Shown: one piece after another, positions 4,946 through 23,388 of the stretch | Numbering within the stretch: the first letter of the stretch is position 1 | How the letters are laid out: each line of letters opens with the position of its first letter | Source of the DNA: Amphiscolops sp. MND2022 | Lineage: Eukaryota | Length of the DNA stretch: 64,000 nt | Reading direction: 5' to 3' | Assembly (NCBI GenBank): GCA_964187785.1 | Contig: OZ076414.1 | Location: forward strand, 50,158,001-50,222,000 | Notes under the pieces: model-generated | What the model saw: only the letters and a program-made list of their open reading frames with translations | Told to the model about the DNA's origin: nothing | Databases searched by the model: none | Made by a program: the position numbers and the translations under genes

Positions 4946-5208
4946 TATGGCGTACTGGATGTCGGAACACTGTACCAAACAGAAGCCTTCTAAAGAGAGC
5001 CAAGTAGATGAACGAATCCATCCAAATGGACGTTAACGTCCGAATGAACGAATTTTAACGTCCAAATGAATATAAACTTATAATGTAATCATTCACTTCC
5101 AAATGGATGAATTGGTATTATGAATAAAATTGATTTTCTTTAACATTTCATTATTAATTTTAAACTCTTTGTAAATCAGACTACATTTTCAGTTTTCCGA
5201 TCCCCATA
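4946..5208 (+). repeat. 5' LTR of the host Gypsy (TATGG...CCATA termini)
   Basis: Clear similarity to 24976-25237 (GATGAACGAATCCATCCAAATGG...CAGACTACATTTTCAG); followed after 2 nt by the PBS. Confidence 0.75.
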
Positions 5209-6119: not shown

Positions 6120-9100
6120 TAAACAGAAATTCCTCCTCGATACTGGTTCAATGGTTTCCATCATCAAGTTCGTTGTCGTAGAGAATGCAGTTGTGTTGTC
6201 TTTAAGAAATCCGTTTTTACAGTGTTTGGAGAATTTATTTGAAGCGAGAAAATGGATTCCAAGGATACTACAAGACCCATTAGCGACGTGAATTCATGAT
6301 CAACACAGCAGCAATTCTTCCTTCCACTACAAGACTTTCCACTGTCAAAGCAGGTTCGATTAAAGTTCACGGAAAAGTTACTCTCCCACTCAAAACTCTT
6401 TCCTTACGACGGTGTATTAATCATGAATTTTACGTCGCTAATGTGTCTTGTAATATCCTTGGAATCCATTTTCTTGCTTCAAATAATTTCTCCATAGACT
6501 GTAAAAACGGATTACTTAAAGACAACACAACTACACTCTCTACGACAACGAACTTCACAAAATGCAACCATATTTCTGTTAATAAAGTTGACATCGATAT
6601 TCCTGATGTCGTAAACGAACGTTTACAAACTATTTTGGGCAATTTCAAAGACGTGTTTGGAGATGTTGACTTTAAAATTAGTGTACAGCATCAAATAGTT
6701 CATTGAATAGAGCTCACCGCAGACGGCCCATTTGGAACTCCAAGAAAACTATGTCCGGAAAAATACAATATAGCAACGCAGTGTTTTGAATCAATGGCTA
6801 ATACTGGATTTTGTTTACCCTCTTGTAGTCAATTTGCTTCACCATTACACATGGTACCAAACAAAGAACCAGATAAATGGAGACCTTGCGGAGATTATAG
6901 AAAATTGAATAACGTAACAAAACGCGACTGCTATCCCCTTCCTCAATTATCTGATTTCAATTTATTTTGAAAGAAAGTTTTCAGCAAGTTGGACTTGGTT
7001 AAGGCATACCATCAGATACCAGTACATCCTGATGATATCGAAAAAACAGCAGTGACAACACCGTTTGGTTTATACGAGTTTCAAGAATGCCTTTCGGTCT
7101 CCGGAACGAAAGACAGACCTTCCAAAGGTTCATGAATTCAGTTTTTCAAGGTCTTGATTTGGTTTTCGCTTTTGTCGATGATGTGCTGATTGCTTCAGAA
7201 GATATTGAAACCCATTTCAAAAATGTCGCAGCTGTTTTGGATCGATTGAAGAAGTTCGGGCTCCGTTGTTCTCTGAAAAAGTGTGAATGGATGAAAGACG
7301 AAGTTGAATTCCTTGGATTGCTGATCACTTCTGAAGGACTACAACCAAAGGCAGACAAAGTGGAAACGATAAAAACCTGGCCTCGGTCAACATCATACAA
7401 ACGTCTAAGAAGCATTATAAGTATGGTCTCTTTTATTAGACAGCAAGTGCCTCATTACGCCGAAATAGTAGAACCACTGCAATTATTACCTAACGAAAGT
7501 CAATCAGCGTGTAATTCACAAGTTTCAAATGACACTATATTCCAATGGGATACAATACACGACGAAGCGTCCTCAAACCTAAAAAAAGCCGAACGTGTCT
7601 TGCTATATCATTTATCCCACGATGGAACGCTCACACTTACGACGGACGCTTCCGACAAGGCCATTGGAGGCGTTTTGCCTGACAATAGGAAGGATGGAAC
7701 CAGTGTCCCACTCGCTTTCTCTTCACGTAAATTATCAGTTGCCGAGCGTAATTATTCGGTATTTGATAAAGAATTGTTGACGGTTTTTGGTGCTACACAA
7801 AAGTTTAGGCGTTACATTGAAGGGAGACATTGTGTGGTTTTTACGGATCACAAACCTATTATTGCTTCTTTCCGAAAAATAGCTGACCATTCTCTGCGAC
7901 AATCTCGACAGTTTTCGTTGTTATCAGAATTTATAGATGATACAATCTATATTTCTGGTGATTCAAACGTTTTTGCTGATTGTTTGTCTCGTCCTGAGGT
8001 TGAGGAAGTAAGCACAGATCAGCCGAAACTCATATCCGCTGTCACGTGCGATCCTTTTGACTTACAGTTTATTGCTGAAGCACAAACGTCAGAATTCAAA
8101 AAGGAAATGAACAAAGTTTATAGCCACGGCACGAAATCAGTCCAAATTCCACCAAATACAACAATCTTGTGTGACAACAATATTGAACCTCGCCCAATTG
8201 TTCCTAAAGACATGAGAAAAAGATTGTTTTTGAACTTTCACAACATGTCGCATCCAAATTGGAAGGCAACCAACAAGCTTATTAATGCATGTTTCACTTG
8301 GCCTTATTTGTCCTAGGACATCAAAGAATGGTGCACGGATTGCCTCAAATGCCACAAGAGCAAAGTCACAAGACATACAATCACACCAATATCACCAACT
8401 GAAAGATTCCCTTCTAGATTTGAACATTTGCATATGGACATAGTTGGACCATTACCTGCGGTGTCTAATTGCCATCACAGGTAGATTTTATCTTTCATCG
8501 ATCGTTCTACCAATCGGGTTGAAGCCACTCCAATAAGATCAATTACTGCCACTGTGGTTGCTGAAACGTTCATGTCAACCTAGTTTTCGAGATTTGGAGT
8601 TCCATTTTGTATAAACAACTTACCAAGGACCTCAGTTTGAATGCGATTTGTTTGCCGAACTTGCCAAAGTGCTTGGTTCTGCATGCTTGCGTACTGCACC
8701 TTGGCATCCTCAAGCAAATGGAAAAAATGAACGTTATCACAGAACACTAAAGGCATCTTTAGCAGCCTCGCCTCTACCATGGATTCAAGCCTCACCAGTA
8801 ATACTTTTTAGCCATCACATCATTCCAAATTCTCAAGGAATATCGCCTGTTCAAATGGTTACCGGTTCTGATGCTTTCGTTCCTAGTATATTCGGTAATG
8901 ACACTCCACCAAGATTTACTCGCGTATTTGTTTCCAAATTATTAACTCATTTGCAGCTTTCGGAATTTACTGTTACACCATCAAGCAAATTACTTTCAAA
9001 GATAAGTTACGTACCCAAAGCTCTCCAGGATTGCTCTCATGTTTGGCTGCGAGTAGATTGCACAAACCGCCTTTGGAAGCACCGTATAGTGGTCCTTTTC

Positions 9101-9129
9101 CGGTGTTGGAACGTGATTCAAAAACTAAG
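6120..9129 (+). pseudogene. pol: Gypsy pol (PR, RT, RNase H, integrase), disrupted; 3' part displaced by the nested insertion
   Basis: FLLDTGS (PR); [28 protein letters not shown] (RT); TTDASDKAIG, DKELL, FTDHKP (RH); HPQANGKNERYHRTLK (IN). Confidence 0.9.
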
Positions 9130-9455
9130 TGTTTTAAAGTAGCTCGAGTGGTTTTCTAGGCGAAAGCGTTTAGGTTCAATTCATTTATTGATATTCTATT
9201 TCACACAATGACAAATAATGGATGAACATTGATTTATATTATGAGGAGAAATAATTCAATCTTTTTCCATTCTCGTTTTCTCTCTCATCAGTAGGTTTTT
9301 CTTCTCTCTCTCCGGAGATTATTGTCCCTCGTCTCTTTTTTCTTTGGGTATTTCCATTTTTCTCGAATTTTCTTTTTTGTCCAATCATGTTTGAGAATGC
9401 CATTCCTTCTGAATATCTTCATCCAAAAATAATATAAGTCATGATGAATATCACA
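9130..9455 (-). repeat. 3' LTR of the env-bearing element (326 bp)
   Basis: TGTTTTAAAG...AATATCACA direct repeat of 23059-23383; preceded by the TSD CTAAG. Confidence 0.97.
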
Positions 9456-10083
9456 GTCGGGCACTTTTTGAAAAAGCGGTACCATCGAGCGAATTTGAAC
9501 CATTTTTTTTGCAAAAGTTTTGAATTGTGCCACAGTCCACCTGGAAGTCATGGGAGCATGCATATGTTTTTTTAGAGTATTTTTTTTTCGAGATTTTGGT
9601 TTCGGTCAAAGATTTTTCAACTAGGCGAAATCCTTTCAGCACAATTGGCTTCATTCAGTCGAAAGGGAAATCTCATTTTTTTTTGTTTTCCAAAAGCTTT
9701 TAAGTCATTTGAATATACTTTGAATAATGAGATGTGAAGATTCACTAATGGGTTTTCGTTTTTAAAGTAATGATTTCTTTCAATTTTCTTCCTTCCCCAA
9801 TCAACTTTGCTGAGTCCAGTCAATTTCGGTAATGGGTTTTTGGAATAGAAATGCAGATAAGAAGATTTGTTTGAGGGCATTGGCTCCAATAATTGGTTTT
9901 TGTATAATTGAAGTTGGGTTTTCGGGATTGTTTGAGAACTCACTTTGTTCGGATAAAGGGATAAGCGATTTTCTTCGCTAATGGGTTTTTGCTTTTACGA
10001 ACATGACCTCTTGTTTGTTTTTCGGTCATGAACCCAATAATTGGCAAAGTTTGTAAGGGTTATCGAGTTTTTTCAGAGCCAAA

Positions 10084-10341
10084 ATGTTGAAATTTGTCGT
10101 TCTGTCACTTTTGTTTGTGTGGTTGGTGACAGCTTGTGTGAGGGTCACAATTGATGAAAGTCACCTCGAAGCCCTATGTTGTGCCAACGGCACATATTTG
10201 TTGATAAATGGGATGGAGACATCCTTTGAAGAGGGTTGGGGGTATTTGTGCCCTGGAGCATCTTTGACAGCTGGGAGTGTTGGCTTCAGTGGAAGGCTCC
10301 TTATCGCTCTCGTCGCTGTAATACGAGTAGCCTGTTTTTGA
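10084..10341 (+). CDS. Antisense 85-aa ORF with signal peptide and hydrophobic C-terminus (small secreted or membrane/GPI-type protein candidate)
   Basis: MLKFVVLSLLFVWLVTA...RLLIALVAVIRVACF; ATG in AAAATG context just after an acceptor-like TTTTTTCAG (10076). Confidence 0.55.
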   Translation: MLKFVVLSLLFVWLVTACVRVTIDESHLEALCCANGTYLLINGMETSFEEGWGYLCPGASLTAGSVGFSGRLLIALVAVIRVACF

Positions 10342-10600
10342 GTTGGCGGCGCTGAGTGCCCAAAAGGACCAAAGATGATGCATGCAACAACAAACATCAT
10401 TGTCTCTTTTTTGTTTGTTTTGCTATAGTATAGAAGAATTTAGATTCAACTCAATTCGTGTAGTCACTTTTCACGCAATGATGAGTAATTGGGATTATTG
10501 TAATTGGGATAATTGCGTTGCTGCAGCCCTGTACTAGCTTTTCAGGATAGGAATGCTTACTGCCACGTACTGCATTGCATTAATCCAAATTGCTTTAACA

Positions 10601-11928
10601 ATGACTAGTACGTATTGTATTGCTGATGCTGCTTCCCGCGACTACAGGGCCCACCGCGATGAAGTTAATTTCAAGTAAGTTGTTCATTTCTTTTCGAGTT
10701 TTGGGAAACTTCTAGGATGAAATTCAAAAATATGGCTCCATAGCATTAAAGAATTTTGTTCGGAGATTAATGTGAACTAATTTTCAAAGTCATATGTAGA
10801 GTCAGATTGAAGGGCGTTCACTTTGAAAGTTGAGAAGTTGATCATTTTGTTCTGTTCTTACAGCGTTACTGACGCATCACAGTTGTCGGAAAAGGATGCT
10901 GCGTTGCATAATTCTAATCAAAAACGCATTGAAGACATTTGGGAGTTCTTACGCGAGGGTTCTGCTATGTTCCGTCTGGGCGTTCCCTCTTTTGACATTG
11001 TCACGTTGCAAGAAGGGGAAGAATTGCCATGTTTCCCAAGTGCTCCAACGAAGGTGATCGGAGGGAATGTTATTCAGCCTTCGCCAGATCTTGAAAAATT
11101 ATCGAAAGAAAAGAGTCTCACCCGACGGAAGTTTCTGAACAGGGTTATTGTAGAAGAAGACAATGGAGAGCGAGCGTGCCCTGTGCTGCCTGGTTCGACC
11201 ATCTTCCTTGAATGTTACCTGCCCGCTGGAAAGGAGATGTTCAAGTACCAAAATTTCGGAGGGTCGCAGGAAAGAAGTTTCACTGCAACAAGAGGCTGGT
11301 GGTATACTGCGTCCCATTTCGAACCAGCAATGGGTGAGAGTGTGAGTCAACTGTTGGTTTCCGGTGATGGTCAAAAGGTTCGGTATTGGTATTTCTAAAA
11401 AGAGCAAACACAACCAACAGGTCAGTACAAGAAATTTTATTGGTTTTTTTTCTTTAGTTTTGGTTAACCACCAATTGTGAGAGGACTGCCCGTCTCGCGT
11501 TGAACGCCTTCACCACTCTCAATTCTTTTCTGGATTTCCTCTCAAGTGAACCCCAGAGATGGTACAAAGGGTTCCGCTGGTGCCTGCAGAGACCCGGAGA
11601 GACTGTGTTGCTGCCTGCTGGGTCGGTTCATCTGGTTGTAACAAGGCCCCCCGGTGGCGATCAAAGCTGCTGGACCTTTCTGCCTGGATACATCGGCTGG
11701 ATTGAGGGTGTCGACCGGGAACGATTAATGCGTTCCATGCGCTGTGATTTCCGCAGAGGCTTCGAAAAGACTCCTGAAGAGATGGCAAAGTTGAAAGGGA
11801 ACCACTGGGGGAAGTTTCAGGAGCTAGGTTTGGGAGCAAGCGGAACTGGAACTGCTCAACCCATCAACAGCAGTAAAAAATCGAAGAAAAGGAAGCGTTG
11901 TAACGGGCGCTTCGTGAAATCAGACTAA
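10601..11928 (+). CDS. Spliced antisense JmjC-domain 2OG/Fe(II) dioxygenase. Exons 10601-10674, 10864-11377, 11458-11928 (352 aa; 368 aa if the in-frame ATG at 10553 is used)
   Basis: Intron 1 GTAAGT...TTACAG (10675-10863, phase 2) and intron 2 GTTCGG...TCTTTAG (11378-11457, phase 0) join the frames exactly. Spliced product has YTASHFEP (HxE), GDGQK|FWL (K-x-W), QRPGETVLLPAGSVHLVVT (distal His) and a basic tail KKSKKRKR. Confidence 0.82.
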
Positions 11929-12003
11929 GTATACATTTTTTTTTGAATTTCATGTATTTTTTTTTTGTTTTCTTCCTGCATGCAAAGTGGACCGTGAATG
12001 AAG

Positions 12004-14259
12004 TTAGAGCTCAGTGGCCTCTTGATCATGTTTTCTCAGCCTCGATAAATACTGCCTCAGGAATGTATAAGTTGACTTTTTGTCGGCTGTTTCATTGAAA
12101 TCGGATTGAATTTCCAAGGGTAGGACCAATGCACATTTATGTAATGGGTGCTCAGGATGTGCTTGGAGAAATTCATAGTCTTCAGGTTTGACTACAGATA
12201 CCGGCAAAGTTTTGATTTTACGCCCCTCGTGTAATGTTCGAAAAGGAAATCTTTTGTGTATTTTAATCCATTTATGGATAAGATACGAATAGCCCCAATG
12301 AAGTGCGATGCTAATAACGAAAGACAATAACCCAAAACACAAAGACCATTTCCAGGGAATGTACTGCCCAAATTTTGCGTCAAATTCTGGCTTCATATGA
12401 CGTAACTTTGAAACAATAGGTGCAGCCAATTTATGTAAAGCTTCCCGATCCGGTGCGGAAGTTTCCAGGAATTGAAATTTCGGTTGAATGTCATCAAAGA
12501 CTTGCTGTTGCGCTTTCGCGATCGAACTGAAATGTGGTAATTCTTCCAATGGAGGAATCAGTTCGAAAATGTTTGCTAAAGGATCAGGTAAGGTTACGTC
12601 CAAACGAATACTTGGTAATAACGCACAAGCTGATAAGTCCGATCGTAGTCTGATGTTATCTCCTGCCAGTTGTCGCCCGCATGCCAAGGTTAAGATGCAA
12701 ACCCTGCAACCAGGGTGCTCGATTCTTTCTAACGGATTGCTGCCATTGCTGGCGGTTTCCACCAACTTGTAATTCGAAGAAGCTGCCATTATGAGCCAAC
12801 GTTCAAAGCCGATGTTTTGCGCTTTTTCTGCCCTTGGTAGTTGAATAATATCCATCTTGCACCGTTCGATTGCCATCATGTGGTCACTGTGAAAAAACAA
12901 AGTGGCCAGACATGAATGCTTTGACGTGTCGGTAGGAATAGCCTTGGTGCAAATTGAAAATCTTGTTGAACCAATGCACAAATCAAGATCTTCGTCGTTG
13001 ATGAGAGCAAGTTCCTGATTATCCATCGAAATGGCTAGGTATTTTGCCTCGGGTCTCCAAAGGAACGCTCTCCCCGACTGTCCATCTGGCATCGGTATTG
13101 GTATCGCGTGTAAAACATTTAGCACGGTAGTTCTCGAAGCCATTGGGATCGCAAGTGTAAGCATTAAACCAGCCTTTGTAGGTACAACATTCGTTACAAG
13201 TTTTGATTCGTAATATGAAAGAATTTCCTGTGGTGGTATAGCCAAAGTGAGGCGATCAGCATTTCCGGATTCTCCAAGATGAATAGTGGTCAGAATATGT
13301 CTCAATTGTTCTCGAGGAACCAAAGAAATGGGCAAATATTGGTTGATGAGCGGTGCGAGAGCATTTAAGATGTTGATTCGAAAAGCATATAGGGCTGCCC
13401 GGTAACTTTTAATGTTGGTGTATAAGGTTTGAAAAATACTTTGTAAAATGATTGAATGATGTCCGGTCTGCTGTCGAGTGTAGAGATATTGTAAACAATT
13501 TCGCATTTCGTTGGTATTGTTGCGAATGATAGCGAACTGTTTCGAAGCTGCCTCCCAGTTTTTGTTTTGAGTGTCAATAATGACCTGTTGTTTTGCTCGA
13601 ACATCACGTAACTCCCCTGCGACCATGAAAAATTTATCATTTTGCTCACTTGTTATAGTTTTGATTTCATCAGTGATGATGTTCATGTACTGATATGCCG
13701 CTTCAATGTTCTTCTGATTTTGTTTGATCCTGCCATCGTCGCATCCACCAAATACTGTCTTCACTACACAAACAACCTTTGAGCCGGCAATGCCCACGCC
13801 TAAAACTGCAGCGGCTCCAGCCAATATTGCAGTTAAACCCCTCGTCTGCCTATGTAGTTGGGCAGAGTCAGTCCCCGAGTGTCTCAACAGGCTCCCAATT
13901 TCGTCAATTAGATATTTTATATCGCCCTGTGCTTCCTTGTTTTGCTGTAATACCTCATTGGCGATCCATCTTAGACCAGAAGAGTGGTCCTCGAGATTGG
14001 TGAAGTTCAACGGACAGCCGTAGTTTTTATATGTCCATAATTTTTCGATTTCGTTCGAAAGGTCCATGTAGCGCTGTTCTATGACAGCTTCGTATGAAGG
14101 AAAAGGAACCAAGATGTCGATTTTCACAAATTTTTCGGTGAGCAATGTTTGTTGTTTCAAATTGAAGATGACACCCTGTTTCGTTTCGGCGGTCTGGGAG
14201 TTAGTACAGGCAGTTGGGAGTGTTTGTAGGATGAGAAGGGCTGTAATTATAAAAGTCAT
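12004..14259 (-). CDS. env: Envelope fusion glycoprotein (class I, F-type), 751 aa
   Basis: N-terminal signal peptide, RQTR furin-type site followed by the hydrophobic fusion peptide GLTAILAGAAAVLGVGIAG, heptad-rich region, Cys-rich ectodomain, NFT/NNT sequons, TM segment SLCFGLLSFVISIALHWGYSYLI. Confidence 0.9.
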   Translation of the reverse strand: MTFIITALLILQTLPTACTNSQTAETKQGVIFNLKQQTLLTEKFVKIDILVPFPSYEAVIEQRYMDLSNEIEKLWTYKNYGCPLNFTNLEDHSSGLRWIANEVLQQNKEAQGDIKYLIDEIGSLLRHSGTDSAQLHRQTRGLTAILAGAAAVLGVGIAGSKVVCVVKTVFGGCDDGRIKQNQKNIEAAYQYMNIITDEIKTITSEQNDKFFMVAGELRDVRAKQQVIIDTQNKNWEAASKQFAIIRNNTNEMRNCLQYLYTRQQTGHHSIILQSIFQTLYTNIKSYRAALYAFRINILNALAPLINQYLPISLVPREQLRHILTTIHLGESGNADRLTLAIPPQEILSYYESKLVTNVVPTKAGLMLTLAIPMASRTTVLNVLHAIPIPMPDGQSGRAFLWRPEAKYLAISMDNQELALINDEDLDLCIGSTRFSICTKAIPTDTSKHSCLATLFFHSDHMMAIERCKMDIIQLPRAEKAQNIGFERWLIMAASSNYKLVETASNGSNPLERIEHPGCRVCILTLACGRQLAGDNIRLRSDLSACALLPSIRLDVTLPDPLANIFELIPPLEELPHFSSIAKAQQQVFDDIQPKFQFLETSAPDREALHKLAAPIVSKLRHMKPEFDAKFGQYIPWKWSLCFGLLSFVISIALHWGYSYLIHKWIKIHKRFPFRTLHEGRKIKTLPVSVVKPEDYEFLQAHPEHPLHKCALVLPLEIQSDFNETADKKSTYTFLRQYLSRLRKHDQEATEL

Positions 14260-14307
14260 TTTGAATTTTTTTTGTGAAATTTATTTCGAGGCTTACTATT
14301 CTTTCGT

Positions 14308-14688
14308 CTAGCCAGGGATGCCGCGGCAGGGCGGGGTGGGCACTCGTTCGTTTTGTTCAGAGCCAGATTGTGCAGCGCGGATGAAATTGGTTGGGGCTTT
14401 ATACATTTTCATGAGCTCGGACTTAACAGTTTGGAAGCGGACTTCATCCCACATGTTGAAGGCTGGTTTCCGGAAGTTATTCGAATGTAGATACAAAGTG
14501 AATTCAATCCATCTGGGGCTCATATATTCAAAGTTTACTACTTGGTTGTTATGTAATGTTAGTTCGAGGTTTTGGTTCAGCAGGCGAATACTTTTGATGG
14601 CATATACGGTGTCGTTATAAAGACAATTCCAGTTCATTGGCAAAGGGGTTTTGGTTAGAGGCATTTCAAAAGGTGTCAACATAAACAA
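14308..14688 (-). CDS. Small ORF (up to 126 aa) directly upstream of env, unknown function
   Basis: Open frame flanked by AT-rich non-coding DNA; stop lies 48 nt before the env ATG; globular-looking composition. Confidence 0.55.
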   Translation of the reverse strand: MFMLTPFEMPLTKTPLPMNWNCLYNDTVYAIKSIRLLNQNLELTLHNNQVVNFEYMSPRWIEFTLYLHSNNFRKPAFNMWDEVRFQTVKSELMKMYKAPTNFIRAAQSGSEQNERVPTPPCRGIPG

Positions 14689-15496
14689 AGAATAAATACA
14701 ATGAATATATGTTTTTTAATTAATTCGATTAAATGAAGAATTGTGTGAATTTTGAGTAACTTTAAGCGGTAAAAGAATTATGAGTTAACTAGTTGAAATG
14801 AAGTTGTGGTTATTTGCAACAAATTGTAAGTTAATGAGTAGGTTAATAGAAGTTATAAAATAACACTAAGTAAAAGAAGTGAATTGTTATTAAGTGTAAT
14901 GAATAATAAGTTGAATTAAAAACGAATAATTTTAATGAAATGTGGTTGATAATGTACGTGAAATAAATAGGTAAAAGATTTGAAAATTTGGAGTTCAGAA
15001 TGCAAGAGTCAAGTTTGTTGTTCGTGTAGAAGCAAGAAGTTCGTTGAATGAAGCGAATTTTTATTATTTTTTTGTTCATCGAATTTGAGCCAATCAAAGC
15101 GCAGTATTCATCTTAGCCAATAAGCAAGTACTGCAGCCAATTGTTAAGAGCTTGATTTCAGCTTCAATTGCCGGGAGCCAGTGAAAATGCCTTATTGGGC
15201 GTGATTTATTCGGAATTTCGGTAACCAAAGCGAGGAGGGCGCACGATTGATTAAGCAGCAATGACATAAGATTGCATCCAATCGCTTTCACGACCAAACG
15301 ACCCAATGGATATATTCTAAGTCGTGTTTTTTTTCAGCAAAATGAAGACTAAACACAGAGCACGATTGATTAATGAAGCAATGATTGGATAAAGCTCTCA
15401 ATCGCCTAAGCAACTGTAAGAATGGTTTCATTTATTTTGCGCGTTTAACATGAGTGCATTGAGCAATTGATTAAGGACACAATGTAATATAATGAC

Positions 15497-18400
15497 TCAA
15501 TCGCTTCCACTGTCGTAACTAAGATGTTGACGCAAATTACCATCAATGAGTTTTTGATGTAAAAGTAAAGGCACTACCCGTCGATTATGTGTTCTGGTGT
15601 TTTGTGGTCCTGTCTGTTGTCTGATTCGGCTGGTAAGCGGTGTTGGAGATGATACTTTCCGAGGTGGAGATGGAGATCGACTTATTGAAGGTTGTTCGCC
15701 GGAACTTGAGTAGTCTGAAATGGAATTCTTCGGACTTCGAAAGTGAAATAATGTCGTTTGTTCTCCGTTTGCATCACTGTCATTCGCTGGCAGTGTACTA
15801 GCGTCCGAAAAGTTGTCAATATCGTTGGCGTCGAAAAGTCTCCCGAATTCAATTTCGGAATCTGAATCCGGGCCGATAGGTTGGTTTATGTTAACGTCAT
15901 CGTTGGGAAAGTGAAGTATGACTGATACTTCCTCTTCTTGTTCGTTGATAGCGTGTATTTCGTCATGAACCAACAGAACTTCGGTGTCATTATCGAAAAT
16001 AGATTGAATGATCTTCAATGCTTCTGAGACAATCGTTTTCGGGAACTGTTCCATCTGTATTGCAACTTGCTTCTTCGTTTGTTCGTGCAAAAATGTCTTC
16101 ACATCCTTCAATCCTTGTCTGAAGGCAGGAAGCGAGGAACCGTCCAGCTCATGCTTCCTTACTACAATGAAAATAATGGACTTGCCTTCTATGGTGCGAA
16201 CGATTGTGTCGCCTACGTCTGCCCTTCTGATGGTTTCAAGTAATGCGATAGGTTGTGTAGTGTTGGTTATTCGAAGAAGTTGCTCCAATGTTAAACATTG
16301 CGATATGCAATAGACGGTCTCAAACGTTGGGTTGCATGTTGACTCCAATTGTTGCTCCAAGTGACTGATAGAGTTATACATTGTGAACTGTCTTGCTAGG
16401 GCAAAACGATCGTCGCGTCGCAACGCGTACCTTCGAGTGGCGCCATATCTCGCATCATCGGAAGAAGTTTCGTCCGGGTTGTCGATCCGATAATCGGTAG
16501 TGTCGATGACTTCGGGACCGTCTTCCATCAGAGTTGGGACATGTCCTTCCACTACAAAAGATTCACGGTCAATGGCGTCGTGAAACGTTGGTTCTGATGT
16601 TGTTTTGATAGGACTTGTTGGTAAAGAATCAGGTTGGAAGGTGATGACACTACGTTCCGAGGAAAATTGAATGTTTTTGGTGAGTCCTGGATCAGACACT
16701 GTCTTTCGTTGCTGGAAGATATGCTGAACTATTGCATTGTCGAATAACTCAGGTTCTGTATTTTCATTCGTCAAAGAGGCATCCGGAGCGAAATTTTGCT
16801 CATTGATATCCGGCAAGTCTTCGACGTCAAATTGAGGTTGGCATGGTCTAAGACGCATTCGGTGTAAGCATTGAGTTTCGTTGGTACCAACTTTGCGCAC
16901 AATGTAGTTCGAGTTGGTGAGAACCTTTTCGACACGATAAAGCGGTAACCATTTCAATTTCCCTTTGCTCAAAGGATCATTTTGTGTGACACTTTTCGGT
17001 TCGAGAATTAAGCAGTAAGAATGAAGATCCAAGGGTGTAGCGTTCGCTTTCCTGTCGTAATATTGTCTATAATTATGATAAGCTGCAATCATCGATTCTT
17101 TAGCTCGTTCGAATGATGCAGTGGCTGCATCTTGCAATTCCCGCAAAACTTCGAAGTTTGCTTGTGCGGTTCTCATTTTTGCGTTTTGGAATCGTAAATC
17201 CAATGGAGTAATCGGCGTGCGTCCATGAAAAAGATCAGAAGGCGTGCACCCAATAGATGGATTATAAGTTGTATTGTGAATAAAAACAGCGAAATCCAAA
17301 TATTTATGCCAATTCGTGAAGCTCTCGTTTGAATTCAATTTGAGAATGTGTTTCAACGGTCCATGGCTCCTTTTCACTAAGCCGATGGACTGAGCATGCT
17401 TCAAAGTGCAATTTTTTAACTGAACTTCAAGCTGTGCTGTCAAAGCTGTCATTAGAGTGGAAGTAAAAGCTGTTCCCAAATCGCAAATAATCATCCGTGG
17501 AATGTAAGCGTGTCTCAGGAAGATACTGATCAAGGCTTTGGCAACATTGTCTGATTCTCCTTTTGTCAATGCTACGGCAAACAAGTATCGAGAAAACACA
17601 TCTATTGCAGTCAACACAAATGTGTGAGGAGATGCTTGTAGTTTTCCAACCAAGTCGTTTTGCATCGTGTCTGCTGGGAAATTTCGCTCCGAAGCTACGG
17701 GTTGTAGAGGTGGTTTGAGAGACACTTGCTTGGCTTCTTTCGTTTGTAAACATGTGAGACAGTTCCTGATATAATCAGTGAGAAATTCGGTGAAATTAGG
17801 AAAATAGAAACGTTTCCGAAATTCTGCGATAGTGCGAGTTATACCAATGTGTCCTCTCCATCTGCTGTTGTGTATTCGGTATAGTAATTCTTTTTGTAGG
17901 TGTGCTGGTACACAAAACTGTTCATGTGATACTTTTCCCGTTTGATCGAAAAACTTGCGGTAAAGAACGCCATCTTTCAGCATGAGTCGTGGTAGTTGTT
18001 TGAAGTATTTGAGTTCAGTCGTTTTGAGATATGCCGGGCTAAGAGTTTTGTTGGTACGTATCCATTCGATTACTTTCGAGAGTGATTTATCCTGTCTTTG
18101 TTCCGCTGCTAAATTCAGTGGAAGTTCATTGTTCGTGAAATTGAAATCATCTAGCGGGTTGGGCGAGGCAAGTGCATTGACAGAGTATAATCCGTTCACA
18201 TAGGGATCTGTTGGCTTCTCATCCCAAGGAGTATGTTCTGCAGCTAAGAAATGTGAAATAGAGTTGTCAGGTGTGTTGACAACAAAATCAACGGTAACTG
18301 ATTGTGTAGGTAGTCGGTCGGATATCTTCAATCGTAACTTTTCGTGTGGATTGATGTGTATTCGTGATAGATAGTCAGCGGCAACATTAGTGTTTCCTGG

Positions 18401-20869
18401 TATGTGTCCTAAGACGAAATTGAAGCTGAGAACATGGTCAACAGCGCTCCAAAGTGAAGATGGTATCGTTTTAGCTTGAAAGAATCTGGTCAGTGCCCTG
18501 TTGTCAGTCAGAATCAGAATAGGGTTCTGAATTCCCCAAACTATATGGGCAAAAGTTTGTAAAGCGAAGTATACTGCTAGAAATTCTTTGGCATAAATTG
18601 ACAATTTCAATTGACTGGGTTGAAAGATCTTAGAACCAAAGGACACTGGTGCGTATTGTTTTCTGCTCGTTTTTGTGTTCGTGTCACATGTGTAATCGTC
18701 TACCAAAAGAACATAACCCGCTGCGTAGAATGAAGCATCTGCCATGATGATATATTGTTTTTCGGCTATTGGTAGGCGAAGGGTCATTTGACAGGCATTC
18801 TTCAAGTCTTGTTTCAGTATCTCAAAAGTTTCGTTATGTTTATCGGTCAATTGGAATTCATTCGTAGATCGCAGCAACTGGTAAAAAGGAAGAAGTTTTT
18901 CAGCTAGTCCGGGTAAAAACGCTTTGTAAAATTGGTAAAAACCAATCATTCGTTTGACTTGTCTCACGTTTTTCGGAATAGGCAAATCTTTTAGAAATTT
19001 TTCTACTTTTTCAAGGGTTGGTGCCATACCCTCAGGGGTGATCGTATTGCCCAAAAATTCAATCTTGTCCAGACCGAATTGACATTTGTTTACTGACAAC
19101 TTGAGACCTGAGTTTCGAATATGGAGAAAAACATCGTCCAAATGGGCTAACATTTCATCTACTGATTTGGCTCCAAGTCCAATATCATCGACGTACAGGA
19201 AACATTTGTCCGCTGTTATGACTGGGTCAAGAAATTTTCGCATGTAGAAACTGAAGGAACTCATTGAACGGCTGAGACCCTGGGCCAATCTTGTAAAAGC
19301 GAAAGTTCGCGATGAGAAATTGAAGGCAAGCAGTTGTATCGACCTTTCATCTGCCAAAGGAATCGTGAAGTAGCCCTGAGATCCGTCCATTTTGCAAAAG
19401 ATTTTTTTTCCTGCTAAGTGCGAGCTCGCATCAGCTAAAGTTGAAATCGGAAAATTATTGTTGTGATAATCTTTCGTTATCAAGTGGTTGATCTTTCGTA
19501 AATCAACCAAGAGGCGTAATTTCCCGGAAGGTTTCCGCTGTGCGAACAATGGTGATGAATATTTTGAGAAGTCTAGAGGCTTGATTATACCGTAATGTTG
19601 GAGCAATGCTAATTCTACGAAAAGTTCATCTTTCAAATGGAGAGGTGTTGGTGGCGATTGGCTATAAACTGGATCATCATGTTGAGGCGTTAAGGTAACT
19701 GTGAAGTCTTTGCTTTTGCCAATATCTAACCGGTGTCGGGCAAAAATGTCATTATATCTCACAAGTAAATCTTCAACCCTTTTTCGGTCATCCATTGATA
19801 ATATAGATCCTGTCCAATCGAAGTCGTTCAAGAATTTCTTGCGATGGTTTTCGTTTGTGATTGGGTCCATTTGCTCCAATGCATTGAATTTTTTAATGGT
19901 ATCGTAAATTGTTTTCTGAGGACCTTTCAGTTGTTCTGGGTGTGCACAATTTTCTGGTGTCGCATACCATTCATCGGTTGTGAACTTTCTTGTTTCCTGA
20001 GTATGATTTCCCGATTGAGTTAGTGAAATTGAATGTGACAAGTTTCTCTGTTGTTTCTGGTTAGAGATGCACTGAATCAAATTATTGTCTAACGGTGTGA
20101 GATATTTCGCCTGTTCGGGAGTTAAAATTTCGAATTTAGCTACGCACGTATTGCTGGTAAATCTGATCGGTATTTCTGCTAGATTGAGTGCGAGTGCTTT
20201 TACACATCCGTTGGTGACCTTTGACAAGGAATTTGTTAGGAACAATTGGTATTTCTTTTCTAGGGTTGCGATTGACGTTACCACCCCCACTGTTGATTCC
20301 GCTTGAGCTTTTTTGTCTGCTTCTAATATTAGTAGCGCTTCTTGATTAGGTTGTATGATGATGTCTTCAGTAGTGTAAAGGTCGATGATTGTTGGTTTGG
20401 CATTTGCTTTTGACGTCAGTGAGGCGTCGGATTCGTACTGGCTGAGTATGAAAGACATTTGTTGTGACGTGAGGCGGCGATTACGGACGTCAATAGAAAG
20501 TTCATAATTATGAAGAAATGGAAAACCAAGTAGAATGCTGTTCAGTTTTGGAAAAACTAAAAACTTCTCTTCGAATATCAACTGCCCAATTTTGAATTGA
20601 ATTGTCGCGGTAAAGAGAACATGGGCTTTTTCGGTATGTGCCATGAGAACATTGAAATCTGGAGGAGGTGATTGCACGATACGGACATCTGTTTGGGTTG
20701 AAATGGCGTCGAAAATTTCTTTTGGCATACCACTGGAAAAAGCTCCAGTGTCTAATACTGCTCTATAAACTAATGTACCGAATTGACAGGGAACTAATAA
20801 TGCATTAGAGGCTGGTTCTGGTACTTTTAATGTAATTGGTAAGTTAGGTTTGACTTCCGGTGCATGCAT
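15497..20869 (-). CDS. pol: Pol polyprotein, 1790 aa from Met: PR, dUTPase-like, RT, RNase H, IN (catalytic E changed to K), macro-like, acidic/Ser-rich tail
   Basis: VLDTGA (PR); KMDGSQGY, YVDDIG (RT); MADAS, KEFLAV, LTDNRAL, ADYLSR (RH); HNSRWRGH...CLTC, DLVG, CDLG, GLVKRSH (IN). Confidence 0.97.
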   Translation of the reverse strand: MHAPEVKPNLPITLKVPEPASNALLVPCQFGTLVYRAVLDTGAFSSGMPKEIFDAISTQTDVRIVQSPPPDFNVLMAHTEKAHVLFTATIQFKIGQLIFEEKFLVFPKLNSILLGFPFLHNYELSIDVRNRRLTSQQMSFILSQYESDASLTSKANAKPTIIDLYTTEDIIIQPNQEALLILEADKKAQAESTVGVVTSIATLEKKYQLFLTNSLSKVTNGCVKALALNLAEIPIRFTSNTCVAKFEILTPEQAKYLTPLDNNLIQCISNQKQQRNLSHSISLTQSGNHTQETRKFTTDEWYATPENCAHPEQLKGPQKTIYDTIKKFNALEQMDPITNENHRKKFLNDFDWTGSILSMDDRKRVEDLLVRYNDIFARHRLDIGKSKDFTVTLTPQHDDPVYSQSPPTPLHLKDELFVELALLQHYGIIKPLDFSKYSSPLFAQRKPSGKLRLLVDLRKINHLITKDYHNNNFPISTLADASSHLAGKKIFCKMDGSQGYFTIPLADERSIQLLAFNFSSRTFAFTRLAQGLSRSMSSFSFYMRKFLDPVITADKCFLYVDDIGLGAKSVDEMLAHLDDVFLHIRNSGLKLSVNKCQFGLDKIEFLGNTITPEGMAPTLEKVEKFLKDLPIPKNVRQVKRMIGFYQFYKAFLPGLAEKLLPFYQLLRSTNEFQLTDKHNETFEILKQDLKNACQMTLRLPIAEKQYIIMADASFYAAGYVLLVDDYTCDTNTKTSRKQYAPVSFGSKIFQPSQLKLSIYAKEFLAVYFALQTFAHIVWGIQNPILILTDNRALTRFFQAKTIPSSLWSAVDHVLSFNFVLGHIPGNTNVAADYLSRIHINPHEKLRLKISDRLPTQSVTVDFVVNTPDNSISHFLAAEHTPWDEKPTDPYVNGLYSVNALASPNPLDDFNFTNNELPLNLAAEQRQDKSLSKVIEWIRTNKTLSPAYLKTTELKYFKQLPRLMLKDGVLYRKFFDQTGKVSHEQFCVPAHLQKELLYRIHNSRWRGHIGITRTIAEFRKRFYFPNFTEFLTDYIRNCLTCLQTKEAKQVSLKPPLQPVASERNFPADTMQNDLVGKLQASPHTFVLTAIDVFSRYLFAVALTKGESDNVAKALISIFLRHAYIPRMIICDLGTAFTSTLMTALTAQLEVQLKNCTLKHAQSIGLVKRSHGPLKHILKLNSNESFTNWHKYLDFAVFIHNTTYNPSIGCTPSDLFHGRTPITPLDLRFQNAKMRTAQANFEVLRELQDAATASFERAKESMIAAYHNYRQYYDRKANATPLDLHSYCLILEPKSVTQNDPLSKGKLKWLPLYRVEKVLTNSNYIVRKVGTNETQCLHRMRLRPCQPQFDVEDLPDINEQNFAPDASLTNENTEPELFDNAIVQHIFQQRKTVSDPGLTKNIQFSSERSVITFQPDSLPTSPIKTTSEPTFHDAIDRESFVVEGHVPTLMEDGPEVIDTTDYRIDNPDETSSDDARYGATRRYALRRDDRFALARQFTMYNSISHLEQQLESTCNPTFETVYCISQCLTLEQLLRITNTTQPIALLETIRRADVGDTIVRTIEGKSIIFIVVRKHELDGSSLPAFRQGLKDVKTFLHEQTKKQVAIQMEQFPKTIVSEALKIIQSIFDNDTEVLLVHDEIHAINEQEEEVSVILHFPNDDVNINQPIGPDSDSEIEFGRLFDANDIDNFSDASTLPANDSDANGEQTTLFHFRSPKNSISDYSSSGEQPSISRSPSPPRKVSSPTPLTSRIRQQTGPQNTRTHNRRVVPLLLHQKLIDGNLRQHLSYDSGSD

Positions 20870-20898
20870 TGATGTAACTGGTGGCTGTGGCGTTTTAT

Positions 20899-21882
20899 TC
20901 AGTTTTTTGGATTGTCGCTTGAAGTTGGTTGAAGTTCAGCGTTCTGGTCCCGTTGCTGTGGGTACGGAATACTAGATCCTCGTCGTGGCGCTGGTTTGCT
21001 CCAACAGTTTTGTTGCGTGTGACCATTCTTGCCGCAATTACGACAGAAAGGTCGTCTGTTGCCACCACGACCGTATCCTCGTTGGTAACCTCTTGGTCCA
21101 CCTCGTCCATATCCACGGTAGTTGTTGGACGGTTGGTAGCCTTGATTGTAGTAACTCGAATTGTAAGCCATGTTTGCTAACTGTTGATCATACTCTTGCT
21201 GGTTCAATTGAAGTGCTTGTGTGACAGATGTAAGATGAGTGAGCGCTTCGAGCACTGCGTTGTTACTTGGTTCAATTGTGACTTCATTGAAAGCTGTTTT
21301 AAGCTCTCCATCGGGTGCAGATATGGCTGCGCGCAGTCGTCGTTTCACAATTTGGCAAAGGGCATCAGTATCTGTGCCATCCGGCTCCCGAAGGAGAACT
21401 TTTTTGAGTTTGTGTGGCATTCCTTCGATGAACTGGTGTCTGACTCTTCTCGTGCGTTCGTCGGTTCGGTCCACGGCTGGTCCTACACCGTCAGGAATAG
21501 CAACCAATGCAAGACTTTGTAAGTCAGTCAAATAGTCATCTGGCTCCTCGGTTTGTGGATCAAATTTTCGATTTGACAGAAGTGCGTCTGTGGTAGCTTG
21601 TTTATCAGCTCCCGCATAACGATCTCTTAAAGCGGTGAGTGCTAAGTCAACGTCATCTCGGGTTGCTTCGGGTTGTGCTAAGTAGAAGTTCAGTGCATTT
21701 CCAGCTAAGTGCAAATGAAGATAACGGGCACGCTGATTGTTGGCATCTGGTATGCGTGCTACTGCGAGGCTGGCTCTGAAAAGTCCTTCGAATTGGGTGA
21801 AGTTTTCCTTGGGTGTTCCGCTGAAGGCTTTGAGGTGGATATGTGGTCCGTTTGCAGGTGCAGCAGGCGCTGCATGTGCCAT
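20899..21882 (-). CDS. gag: Gag, 327 aa, with CCHC zinc knuckle
   Basis: FSGTPKEN, HLHLAGNALNFY and HQFIEGMP capsid motifs; RG/YG-rich segment; CRNCGKNGHTQQNC (CX2CX4HX4C). Confidence 0.95.
   Translation of the reverse strand: MAHAAPAAPANGPHIHLKAFSGTPKENFTQFEGLFRASLAVARIPDANNQRARYLHLHLAGNALNFYLAQPEATRDDVDLALTALRDRYAGADKQATTDALLSNRKFDPQTEEPDDYLTDLQSLALVAIPDGVGPAVDRTDERTRRVRHQFIEGMPHKLKKVLLREPDGTDTDALCQIVKRRLRAAISAPDGELKTAFNEVTIEPSNNAVLEALTHLTSVTQALQLNQQEYDQQLANMAYNSSYYNQGYQPSNNYRGYGRGGPRGYQRGYGRGGNRRPFCRNCGKNGHTQQNCWSKPAPRRGSSIPYPQQRDQNAELQPTSSDNPKN
20902..20908 (-). promoter_or_regulatory. -1 ribosomal frameshift slippery heptamer A AAA AAC at the gag-pol junction
   Basis: Gag ends CCA AAA AAC TGA. 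The -1 frame (AAA CTG AAT AAA ACG CCA CAG CCA CCA GTT ACA TCA ATG) is open into pol. Confidence 0.85.
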
Positions 21883-22542
21883 TGTTCAAAGAAAATTTGT
21901 TTTTCTTCACTTGGTCGTCTCCTGTCTTGTACTTGGGGTCCGGGCAAAATTTTTCTTTTCGGCCCGGTTTTTTTATTTTTGTAATTATTGGCTGCTGCTA
22001 TACGAATTTGTTCGATAGAACAAATTCGATCTCGAAAATTTCGTCAGAATTGCGAAATTCGCACTCTGGGGCGAGATATTGAGCCCCGAAATTGCGATGA
22101 AAGATAGAATTTAGTGGAGTCAACGTCTTTGATTTTGTTTTTAAGTGTGCTCTGGGAGCCTTCTGTCGCATGCGAGCCAATGAAAATAGCTGTTCTGGTT
22201 GTAAGAGCGCATCGCTGGGGTTATTCCTTTTTTTCGATATTTTTTTTTGATAACGTTGTAAAAAGATAGTCGCAAAATAGGTATTAATTCAGCTGGTAGT
22301 TATAGAATTATCAAAATTCGATGATAACACTTGGGTTTGTTTTCGTAGCGCGATGCAATGCGAAAACCCTGCGTTAGTAACCACTATCTGCATAATCTGT
22401 AGAAATATGATGGCGAAAATAGATAAAATTTTGTCCAAAAACGACTTGTGGTGCTAAGATGAATGTTTTGAATGTTGAAGACTTAACTTATACAATAGAT
22501 GATTTGTTGTAGTATGATATTCAACAAGTGTATTTGGAAAGA

Positions 22543-22872
22543 CTAATTTTCAGCGTCGTTACACGGATCCGAAAAGTTTCCCACATACTCAATTAGTTCT
22601 TCAAAAGTATGAATGCAATTGATATTTGGGTCTAGAAGTGGTTGATAGTTTATCAAGGCAGTTTCTAATTGTTGCCATGCCGTAGTGTATTTGTAAACGA
22701 GCTGATGAAATACCTGGTGTGGTGCGTCGAAGGTGACTCCCAGTAAAAGGATAGGTTTTCCATATGACCAATAAATTCGTTTGATTAATAAATCCTCATC
22801 TGGTGTAACCCATAACATGTGAACTGTGTGAAAAGCGAATTCAGGATTCAAATAATCGATGGAAATTTCCAT
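22543..22872 (-). CDS. Upstream ORF in the 5' leader, 109 aa, unknown function
   Basis: Uninterrupted ATG-initiated ORF in an otherwise AT-rich, stop-rich leader; no recognisable motif. Confidence 0.45.
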   Translation of the reverse strand: MEISIDYLNPEFAFHTVHMLWVTPDEDLLIKRIYWSYGKPILLLGVTFDAPHQVFHQLVYKYTTAWQQLETALINYQPLLDPNINCIHTFEELIEYVGNFSDPCNDAEN

Positions 22873-23040
22873 TTGTTCGGTCTGTTTAAACGACTATTTC
22901 GGTGGTTGTAGATCGATCATGAATGTATTTTTGTTACAATAAATACGAGAAGTTTGCGATTCTTTCAAATTCGGAAAATTCCTTCGGAAAATTTTGATTG
23001 TTTTGTTTTTGCATTGGTGAAGGTGATGGAGAATATCAAT

Positions 23041-23058
23041 GAGGACACCTTGTCACCA
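23041..23058 (-). promoter_or_regulatory. Primer-binding-site-like sequence TGGTGACAAGGTGTCCTC (primer tRNA not assigned)
   Basis: Starts with TGG directly after the LTR end on the minus strand. Confidence 0.65.
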
Positions 23059-23383
23059 TGTTTTAAAGTAGCTCGAGTGGTTTTCTAGGCGAAAGCGTTT
23101 AGGTTCAATTCATTTATTGATATTCTATTTCACACAATGACAAATAATGGATGAACATTGATTTATATTATGAGGAGAAATAATTCAATCTTTTTCCATT
23201 CTCGTTTTCTCTCTCATCTGTAGGTTTTTCTTCTCTCTTTCCGGAGATTATTGTCCCTCGTCTCTTTTTTTTTGGGTATTTCCATTTTTCTCGAATTTTC
23301 TTTTTTGTCCAATCATGTTTGAGAATGCCATTCCTTCTGAATATCTTCATCCAAAAATAATACAAGTCATGATGAATATCACA
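23059..23383 (-). repeat. 5' LTR of the env-bearing element (325 bp)
   Basis: Direct repeat of 9130-9455; followed by the TSD CTAAG; PBS immediately internal. Confidence 0.97.
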
Positions 23384-23388
23384 CTAAG

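Follow-up and report, generated by a model that had tools for sequence, protein, structure and literature searches.

The Carrier Retroelement

The DNA analyzed here, a stretch of 64,000 nt that we call the window, contains a whole LTR retroelement of 14,254 bp on the minus strand (9130-23383), recognized from its LTR pair, its target duplication and its set of open reading frames (ORFs), with a gene order like that of Ty3/gypsy elements. The target-site duplication, CTAAG, is found at 9125-9129 on the left and at 23384-23388 on the right. The 3' LTR (326 bp, 9130-9455, minus strand) and the 5' LTR (325 bp, 23059-23383, minus strand), both with TG..CA ends, are identical in 322 of 326 aligned columns, and a stretch directly inside the 5' LTR that starts with TGG (23041-23058, minus strand) reads like a primer-binding site. 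Four ORFs follow on the minus strand: a gag-like ORF of 327 aa (20899-21882), which has a weak zinc-knuckle match (zf-CCHC, E 0.036) and the same length in the siblings; a pol ORF of 1790 aa (15497-20869) with domain matches to reverse transcriptase, RNase H and integrase; a small ORF of 126 aa (14308-14688); and an env-like ORF of 751 aa (12004-14259). The gag, pol and env-like ORFs are uninterrupted, no ORF of the element was seen to be broken, and the lengths of the element's ORFs equal those of uninterrupted siblings. Judged from its sequence, the retroelement is intact, recently inserted and virus-like.

Within pol, the matched domains are RVT_1 (residues 445-610), RNase H (675-801), and Integrase_H2C2 together with rve (987-1154), and this order of reverse transcriptase, RNase H and integrase is that of Ty3/gypsy-like elements. 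A weak dUTPase-like stretch (E 0.007) lies ahead of the reverse transcriptase, and the roughly 600 aa after the integrase match none of the families searched. Membership in Bel-Pao was considered and rejected: Peptidase_A17 is absent from this pol, and the same search finds one in a neighboring element. The match in that neighbor lies at 31902-32501.

The 126-aa ORF between pol and the env-like ORF corresponds to a called gene of 124 aa in siblings of the same genome and has no family match. The env-like ORF has the predicted features of a cleaved fusion glycoprotein, with a hydrophobic N-terminus (1-19), the sequence R-Q-T-R at 137-140, a hydrophobic stretch at 139-171 and a membrane anchor at 634-658. 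It is 75% identical to a 755-aa ORF of a divergent lineage of the same family in which the cleavage site and the hydrophobic peptide are kept. No relative was found for it in Pfam, NCBIfam or the PDB, even with a profile of five sequences.

A Three-Exon Gene on the Antisense Strand

Sequence reading and comparison with siblings place an antisense gene of three exons on the plus strand, running from start to stop codon at 10553-11928. It is convergent with the env-like ORF, the two stops being separated by 75 bases. An earlier note on this DNA had described an intron-containing gene carried antisense inside an env-bearing LTR element, and the env-like ORF, the LTRs, the target-site duplication and the layout of the siblings bear this out.

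All exons and introns are on the plus strand. The coding part of exon 1 (10553-10674), which includes an alternative in-frame start at 10601, stops two bases into a codon, and GTAAGT comes next on direct reading. Intron 1 (10675-10863, 189 nt, GT..AG) ends with a pyrimidine run and CAG and is common to all 12 relatives, in which it measures 160-189 nt. Exon 2 (10864-11377; 171 codons plus one base) supplies the third base of the interrupted codon and goes on in the frame of a 191-aa ORF at 10823-11398; it carries an invariant H-F-E and has an invariant Lys at its end. Intron 2 (11378-11457, 80 nt, GT..AG) starts with GT, ends with a run of T and TAG, and is likewise common to all relatives (66-81 nt). 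Exon 3 (11458-11928; 156 codons plus the stop) opens in phase 0, in the same frame as an ORF at 11500-11928, and contains a JmjC-like P-G-E-T-V..P..S-V-H block and a basic tail. If the introns were left in, every frame would run into a stop codon after a few triplets. Direct reading thus confirms the claim that two GT-AG introns join three frames in exact phase. Translation from the first ATG would give a product of 368 aa; a start at the in-frame ATG at 10601, near the one used in the divergent lineage, would give 352 aa. Neither a canonical TATA box nor an AATAAA signal was found in the vicinity of the gene.

A second, smaller antisense ORF of 85 aa lies upstream of the three-exon gene (10084-10341, plus strand). 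It has a hydrophobic N-terminus, contains Cys, and is present in the divergent lineage too, with 43% identity over 53 aa (E 2e-12) and a pN/pS of 0.49.

Sibling Copies, Introns and Selection

The gene is not a peculiarity of this copy, a case that the earlier note had considered, and it is found at the same place in 12 sibling loci. Nine of these belong to the same assembly; their LTR is at the same relative place and their outer flanks differ, and they are therefore separate insertions. The other three come from other marine samples and represent the divergent lineage, at about 65-70% protein identity. Across the copies of the family, the gene is antisense to gag-pol and lies in the interval from the last sense gene to the 3' LTR. 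The layout of the gene on the plus strand followed by env-like, pol and gag on the minus strand is identical in L001 and L008-L012 and degraded in L002 and L005, and L004 has kept the LTR and the gene without a called element gene. In L006 and L007, both from other samples, the gene is on the plus strand and the env-like ORF with part of pol on the minus strand, up to the contig ends. The gene is intact in six of the ten copies of one genome and broken in several copies, among them the two longer contigs that represent the divergent lineage. For L003, L006 and L007, nucleotide break counts were noisy, and tblastn results and translations were used instead. More distant copies were not found in any of the DNA searched.

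The introns change in length from copy to copy (189, 188, 186, 167 or 160 nt for intron 1; 81, 80, 79, 77, 69, 67 or 66 nt for intron 2) by steps that are not multiples of three, and the exons stay open. In the alignment with L005, the introns account for all 27 gap columns, and the 1107 exon bases are free of gaps. Relative to L007, the intron alignments are no better than those of shuffled sequences, and exon 2 is ungapped at 63.5% identity; ungapped identity and gap counts were used for this comparison, the gapped aligner having scored shuffled controls equally high. Position, phase and GT..AG of both introns are the same in all 13 copies compared, which is more than chance would provide.

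Substitutions give the same picture. Between the copy in the window and the divergent lineage, pS is 0.80-0.88 (saturated) and pN is 0.21; the corresponding pN is 0.16 in env and 0.30 in the C-terminal portion of pol. Mismatches between the lineages at codon positions 1, 2 and 3 are 0.26, 0.19 and 0.64. Against L005 and L002, omega is 0.25-0.37. Neutral evolution, which the earlier note had also taken into account, is not what these values describe: by sequence comparison, purifying selection on the gene is about as strong as on the element's own genes. Synonymous sites are saturated, pN resembles that of env, GT..AG is kept and the exons are open; therefore, it is nearly certain that this is a real, selected and spliced accessory gene of the element.

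Motifs and Searches for Relatives

The earlier note had read the product as a JmjC dioxygenase from a series of motifs, which are present in the sequence. S-H-F-E-P is found at exon-2 residues 150-154, G-Q-K closes exon 2 and F-W opens exon 3, and exon 3 holds Q-R-P-G-E-T-V-L-L-P, G-S-V-H-L-V, and a basic cluster at residues 140-147. H-F-E occupies exon-2 residues 151-153 and the second His is residue 58 of exon 3, and in the spliced model the two are 78 residues apart, a distance which we take to be typical of the JmjC fold. The order H-x-E ... H and its spacing are as in JmjC/cupin oxygenases, this being a reading of motifs in which metal binding is putative. H-F-E, the second His, and the Lys that ends exon 2 are identical in all copies; the Lys, 20 residues after the first His, is a candidate 2-oxoglutarate-binding residue. 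Conservation in exon 2 is highest in the C-terminal four of nine blocks of 19 residues, H-F-E included, and the 13 invariant columns of exon 3 are all found at residues 46-66, around the second His.

Family searches were run exon by exon. Exon 3 matches Pfam JmjC in seven of seven copies at E 0.007-0.04 and 15.5-17.2 bits, below the cut-off of 24, and this is the only family matched by all seven exon-3 sequences. The match consists of 22 residues around the second His, the best score (E 0.0073, 17.2 bits) covering profile positions 82-103 of 114. Against the PDB, the exon-3 profile finds four chain sequences of JMJD6 (E 0.21-0.22, 13-15 bits). At E 0.21 and 13-15 bits, the invariant His falls on residue 273 of the JMJD6 chain, which is a metal ligand in JMJD6. 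With the exons searched one by one, no JmjC/cupin model was matched at its curated threshold, and exon 2 had no match in Pfam, NCBIfam or the PDB, a result that trimming to the conserved core did not change. The search for a JmjC/cupin match that the earlier note had suggested was answered by exon 3, below threshold, and not by exon 2. Moreover, the weak JmjC matches are not independent of the original claim because that claim came from the same motif. The sub-threshold match of exon 3 and the invariant H-F-E and His speak for a JmjC dioxygenase; with exon 2 unmatched, this part of the claim is not established. The evidence is suggestive that the gene may encode a JmjC-type oxygenase, an assignment which rests on one short motif.

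Searches for other relatives gave little. Using phmmer against the PDB, nothing was found for exon 2 and only chance-level matches for the single-sequence exon 3, which also had no match in a word-index protein search. A HMMER profile of exon 2 run against 1.84 billion representatives returned only the siblings and two repetitive artefacts (P0006 and P0007), and hence there is no known cellular source gene. NCBIfam and PHROGs searches found nothing, tblastn against plasmids gave chance matches only, and two scans of JGI metagenomes with the exon-3 and exon-2 alignments returned pattern matches and no confirmed relative. A host paralogue was not found in any search. AlphaFold, which had been proposed as a check for the JmjC/cupin fold, was run on the separate exons and yielded no fold: with a mean pLDDT of 34.3 for exon 2 alone (six sequences) and 39.4 for exon 3 alone, the models were too poor for a fold comparison.

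Proposed Mechanism and Alternatives

The best explanation, to which we assign a probability of roughly 0.55, is that of a spliced antisense accessory gene of a Ty3/gypsy-like element that most likely encodes an oxygenase of JmjC/cupin type. From its sequence, the product is fairly likely to have a JmjC/cupin fold. That it is catalytically active and has a role in favor of the element is rather doubtful, and the full mechanism, in which an active JmjC oxygenase made from the spliced antisense transcript acts in the nucleus to keep the element expressed, is unlikely. According to this mechanism, transcription of the plus strand would begin at a promoter within the stretch of about 1.1 kb that separates the 3' LTR from the start codon, and the transcript would be spliced by the host. 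The introns would persist through reverse transcription because the genomic RNA carries their reverse complement, which is not a substrate for splicing. That antisense orientation shields introns from the splicing of the element's RNA had been argued in the earlier note, and this is sound established logic. The product of 352-368 aa would most likely fold as a small JMJD6-like Fe(II)/2-oxoglutarate hydroxylase of the JmjC/cupin type, and its putative metal ligands in the spliced model would be the exon-2 H-F-E and the exon-3 His 78 residues later. Transport to the nucleus would be due to the conserved basic tail, and the target there would be a protein of the host or the element, such as chromatin or RNA-processing factors, whose modification would benefit the element.

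A selected and spliced antisense gene could also encode something other than a JmjC protein. The P-G-E..P..H block would then be due to chance or convergence, and the product would have a non-catalytic role, such as the nuclear regulation of element transcription, RNA export or silencing. We consider this a live possibility, at odds clearly below even: every database match is sub-threshold and limited to some 22 residues, exon 2 is an orphan, and antisense ORFs of plant elements are also without a recognizable domain, some of them being nuclear (PMC7264820). However, JmjC is the single family matched, and it is matched in seven of seven copies. No copy varies at the aligned His, at the H-F-E upstream of it or at the Lys, the 78-residue spacing of the two His is presumably typical of the fold, and conservation peaks exactly at the H-F-E and second-His blocks.

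Far less probable is that the segment is passenger host DNA with no role for the element or that its exons are chance ORFs. No known homologue anchors a function and some copies are broken, yet phase and splice sites are kept across two lineages with saturated synonymous sites, pN is lower than in part of pol, and the excess of third-position mismatches marks a coding frame. Both forms of this explanation are disfavored by these observations, and also by the six intact copies out of ten in one genome and the failure of every search to find a host paralogue. The least probable relationship, with amino-methyltransferases of the N6/N4 type, would make S-V-H-L-V-V-T-R-P-P the catalytic motif and draws on the best PDB match of the exon-3 profile, the putative modification methylase 2zie (E 0.11, 15.8 bits, query 52-85; E 0.43 with the single sequence), and it was rejected, as the E-value is at chance level, L005 and L007 have other residues in place of both prolines whereas the His never varies, no methyltransferase family appeared in the Pfam or NCBIfam searches, and the cofactor-binding glycine motif was not seen.

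Comparison with Known Systems

For the JmjC reading, the closest named group is JMJD6 and the small JmjC-only hydroxylases (PF02373, cupin-type), which provide the only named matches, to the block around the second His. The order and spacing of H-x-E ... H, the intervening Lys, the small size and the basic tail are shared as well. Set against these likenesses, no score reaches its threshold, the N-terminal half has no match, a cellular relative was not detected, the gene is borne on the antisense strand of a mobile element, and fold and activity are predicted.

A spliced antisense transcript from the 3' end of the provirus is known from complex retroviruses (the HBZ type of deltaretroviruses), in which it encodes a nuclear regulatory protein. 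The transcript of the gene described here would similarly be antisense, spliced and read inward from the 3' end. The HBZ-type product is, however, a transcription-factor-like protein and not an enzyme.

In plants, the Ty3/gypsy elements Grande of maize, RIRE2 of rice and Retand of Silene have additional antisense ORFs between pol and the 3' LTR, which are conserved within families, have no clear database relatives, and were proposed to have a nuclear regulatory role (PMC7264820; see also PMC11963269). In position, orientation, conservation within the family and the lack of clear database relatives, they are like the gene in the window. Unlike the plant elements, the one here includes an env-like ORF and was found in assemblies of marine samples with a probably non-plant host; its antisense gene is further set apart by a candidate enzymatic motif and by two introns, which the comparison of copies documents.

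The gypsy elements of Phalaenopsis orchids have an ORF for an AlkB-type 2-ODD, an m6A RNA demethylase with clear AlkB homology and measured activity that was interpreted as a means of counter-defense (PMC9289625). There, as possibly here, a gene of the Fe(II)/2OG-oxygenase superfamily was fixed in an LTR lineage, the gene in the window being a candidate only; the oxygenase family and the host kingdom are different. In bdelloid rotifers, retrovirus-like LTR elements have captured extra enzyme ORFs: ORF3s downstream of pol encode a GDSL esterase or a DEDDy exonuclease, a dUTPase is located between protease and reverse transcriptase, and a paramyxovirus-F-like env is cleaved at R-x-x-R (PMC5408684). 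The element described here resembles these invertebrate elements, with its weak dUTPase match at the same place and R-Q-T-R in its env-like ORF. No homology to their extra ORFs was seen, and the passages on these elements mention no antisense or intron-bearing ORF (PMC5408684).

A full-text search of the literature agrees with the earlier note, which knew of no JmjC gene described in an LTR element. This novelty is qualified by close precedents in the plant antisense ORFs and the orchid AlkB.

Significance of the Antisense Gene

The additional genes of retroelements are a guide to the limits on their spread in a host. Conserved antisense ORFs of plant elements have so far been without a function, and the orchid AlkB has so far been an isolated case of an element-borne enzyme able to remove a regulatory methyl mark. 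Here, a young and apparently complete family with an env-like ORF keeps a spliced antisense gene under selection across deeply diverged lineages. If the JmjC reading is true, it would link the biology of the element to the hydroxylation and demethylation of proteins and chromatin, and the gene would be a clear natural example of antisense placement letting a retroelement keep an intron-bearing gene. If the product is indeed an active nuclear JmjC enzyme, it would be an element-borne enzyme for counter-silencing or splicing control, a kind undescribed for LTR elements. Its candidate active site is open to direct structure and expression checks.

As for other features, neither Rfam families nor tRNAs were found in the 64,000-nt window. 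A TPT transporter gene was also noted, the nearest relatives of which are 52-55% identical.

The Element and Its Antisense Gene

A conserved, intron-bearing, antisense accessory gene travels with an LTR retroelement of Ty3/gypsy-like gene order. The element spans 14,254 bp on the minus strand (9130-23383) and contains the gene on the plus strand (10553-11928). Its LTRs (9130-9455 and 23059-23383) are identical at 322/326 positions, have TG..CA ends and are flanked on both sides by a CTAAG duplication; a stretch starting with TGG was read just after the 5' LTR. The sense strand of the element holds a gag-like ORF of 327 aa, pol of 1790 aa in the order RT, RNase H, integrase, and an env-like ORF of 751 aa. 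The last of these has a hydrophobic N-terminus, an R-Q-T-R motif with a hydrophobic peptide behind it, and an anchor at the C-terminus, and the label 'env' is based on these features alone because Pfam, NCBIfam and PDB give no sequence relative. No break was counted in the genes of the window's copy, whose gag, pol and env have the lengths found in uninterrupted siblings. The gene is located between the env-like ORF and the 3' LTR, convergent with env, with 75 bases separating their stops. The earlier note had likewise placed the gene antisense inside an env-bearing LTR element.

The note had also read the gene as three exons joined in phase, and the plus strand bears this out. Exon 1 (10553-10674) stops after the second base of a codon, with GTAAGT next to it, and intron 1 (10675-10863) has a pyrimidine run and CAG at its 3' end. 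The split codon is completed by exon 2 (10864-11377), which then follows the frame of a 191-aa ORF at 10823-11398. Intron 2 (11378-11457) opens with GT and has a long T-run and TAG at its end, and exon 3 (11458-11928), in phase 0, extends to the stop codon at 11926-11928; all of these lie on the plus strand. Read through without splicing, every frame hits a stop after only a few codons. All of the motifs quoted in the note were found in the exons. By arithmetic, the product would have 368 aa if counted from the first ATG and 352 aa from an in-frame ATG at 10601, which is close to the start codon of a divergent lineage from other samples (L003, L006 and L007). No canonical TATA box and no AATAAA signal turned up close to the gene.

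Sibling Copies and Shared Introns

Relatives of the exon-2 ORF were confined to ENA assemblies, where look-ups led to 12 further loci carrying the gene; it is not unique to the window's copy. Nine of the 12 come from the window's own long-read assembly (ERZ25074608). In these the LTR lies at the same relative place, and since the outer flanks and adjacent pentamers differ, the nine loci are separate insertions. Six of them (L001 and L008-L012) have in common the order gene, env-like ORF, small ORF, pol and gag; fragments of this order remain in L002 and L005, and no called element gene is left in L004. The divergent lineage comes from three other samples, one labelled marine metagenome (PRJEB4352), with 65-71% identity in the gene and 75% in env, and there the gene likewise adjoins the env-like ORF.

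Both introns occur in 13/13 copies at identical codon position and phase, with a GT start and an AG end. For L002 and L004 the estimated intron bounds were 2-4 bases off, and GT and AG were taken from the printed flanks. Intron 1 is 189, 188, 186, 167 or 160 nt long and intron 2 is 81, 80, 79, 77, 69, 67 or 66 nt long; frame-shifting length changes are tolerated in the introns, and the exons remain open. Between the window and L005, 27/27 gap columns fall in introns and 0 in 1107 exon bases. Between the window and L007, intron alignments are no better than those of shuffled sequence, with exon 2 gap-free at 63.5%. As judged from the genomic copies, the introns are common to the relatives.

Selection and State of the Copies

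Compared with the divergent lineage, the gene in the window has a saturated pS of 0.80-0.88 and a pN of 0.21, env has 0.87 and 0.16, and the C-terminal part of pol has 0.83 and 0.30, omega being not computable in all three. The closer comparison with L005 and L002 gave pS 0.14-0.16, pN 0.04-0.05 and omega 0.25-0.37 for the gene, whose mismatches are distributed over codon positions 1-3 as 0.26/0.19/0.64. Taken together, these values show a constraint on the gene about equal to that on the element's own genes; it is not evolving neutrally, the outcome that the earlier note had set against its own claim.

The gene is unbroken in 6/10 copies of the window's assembly (the window, L001 and L009-L012). 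It has one frameshift in L008, one stop in L005, two frameshifts and an in-frame deletion in L002, and about four stops and five frameshifting indels in L004. As for the element genes, env and pol are uninterrupted in L008, L009, L010 and L012, env is split in two pieces in L001, env is in two and pol in three pieces in L011, and those of L002, L004 and L005 show heavy degradation. In L006 and in L007, one in-frame stop interrupts exon 3 of the gene, with the env-like ORF intact; the contig of L003 breaks off within exon 3, and the gene there has one frameshift and is without this stop. The stop may be a widespread variant, the product of a collapsed many-copy assembly, or a sign of decay of the gene in that lineage.

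Is the Product a JmjC Oxygenase?

Searches were run exon by exon. Pfam JmjC is the sole family matched by all 7/7 exon-3 sequences (E 0.02-0.04); its best score, on an 81-aa exon-3 piece, is 17.2 bits (E 0.0073) and lies below the cut-off of 24 bits, with the match limited to profile positions 82-103 of 114. Against PDB, an exon-3 profile met four JMJD6 chain sequences at E 0.21-0.22, and at this level the invariant exon-3 His aligns to chain residue 273, which is known as a metal ligand. This His, the H-F-E motif and the terminal Lys of exon 2 are identical in every copy, and their blocks are the conservation maxima of the gene. Exon 2, whole or trimmed to its core, had no match in Pfam, NCBIfam or PDB. 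A full HMMER read of 1.84 billion representatives with an exon-2 profile returned only the siblings and two repetitive artefacts, and JGI metagenome scans with the exon-3 and exon-2 alignments gave no confirmed relative. AlphaFold, given exon 3 and exon 2 separately, returned mean pLDDT 39 and 34, too poor for comparing folds. A modification methylase match (E 0.11) was set aside, as it rests on a proline pair not conserved among copies. We put the probability of a JmjC/cupin fold at roughly 0.6. Of the JmjC dioxygenase identity proposed in the note, the invariant H-F-E, Lys and His and the sub-threshold JmjC and JMJD6 matches stand in favor; against it, exon 2 is unmatched and no JmjC match reaches the cut-off. 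The product is a candidate member of the family.

Known Systems and Proposed Mechanism

Complex retroviruses have spliced antisense genes. In plant Ty3/gypsy elements, antisense extra ORFs without assigned function lie between pol and the 3' LTR (PMC7264820), the same position and strand as the gene here. Orchid gypsy elements carry a functional AlkB-type 2OG oxygenase ORF (PMC9289625), and in bdelloid LTR elements there are enzymatic ORF3s, a dUTPase and a paramyxovirus-F-like env (PMC5408684). In line with the note, no LTR element with a JmjC gene was found in the full-text literature searched, which covers part of the journals.

The gene would have its own plus-strand transcription, with a start between the 3' LTR and the ATG, and its transcript would be spliced by the host. 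Its introns would survive because they are present in the genomic RNA of the element in reverse-complement form. The conserved basic tail could direct the product to the nucleus, where a putative oxygenase activity would act on host or element proteins, candidate targets being chromatin (counter-silencing) or RNA-processing factors.

Other Features of the Element and the Window

Within the element, pol extends about 600 aa past integrase without a family match (15497-17299, minus strand), and its residues 151-246, before RT, form a weak dUTPase-like stretch (E 0.007) in the dUTPase position of bdelloid LTR elements. The 1.2-kb spacer from pol to the env-like ORF holds a 126-aa ORF (14308-14688, minus strand) without a family match, whose counterpart in siblings from the same genome is called as a gene of 124 aa. 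Because no more than about 256 nt separate pol and env in L006 and L007, this stretch seems confined to one element lineage. Upstream of the gene, the antisense strand holds another small ORF (10084-10341, plus strand; 85 aa), with a hydrophobic N-terminus and several Cys. The divergent lineage has it too (L007 557-853; 43% identity over 53 aa, E 2e-12, pN/pS 0.49). It could encode a small secreted or membrane protein of its own, or represent an upstream exon.

Nested retroelements make up most of the first 36 kb of the window. The element has landed in another gypsy-like element: a reading frame with RT, RNase H and integrase (7087-9142, plus strand) reaches as far as the LTR at 9130, and two 184-bp repeats (4956-5139 and 24976-25159; 90% identical, 20,020 bp apart) may be the LTRs of this older element. 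A third LTR element (27856-35263) has LTRs of roughly 890 bp, 87-94% identical and spaced about 6.52 kb; it is Bel-Pao-like, with a Pao-type peptidase (Peptidase_A17, E 4e-23) at 31902-32501. A further reverse-transcriptase fragment lies at 897-1685 on the minus strand (RVT_1, E 3e-9). From 59253 to 63690 and beyond there is a tandem repeat with at least three copies of a 2069-bp unit, 96% identical, and the minus-strand ORFs of 214 and 183 aa in each unit have no Pfam match. No RNA genes were found within the window. The only clear host gene seen is a single-exon gene of the triose-phosphate-transporter family (56015-57340, plus strand; 441 aa), whose nearest relatives in 5.8 billion clusters are just 52-55% identical, and the host therefore comes from a poorly sampled lineage.
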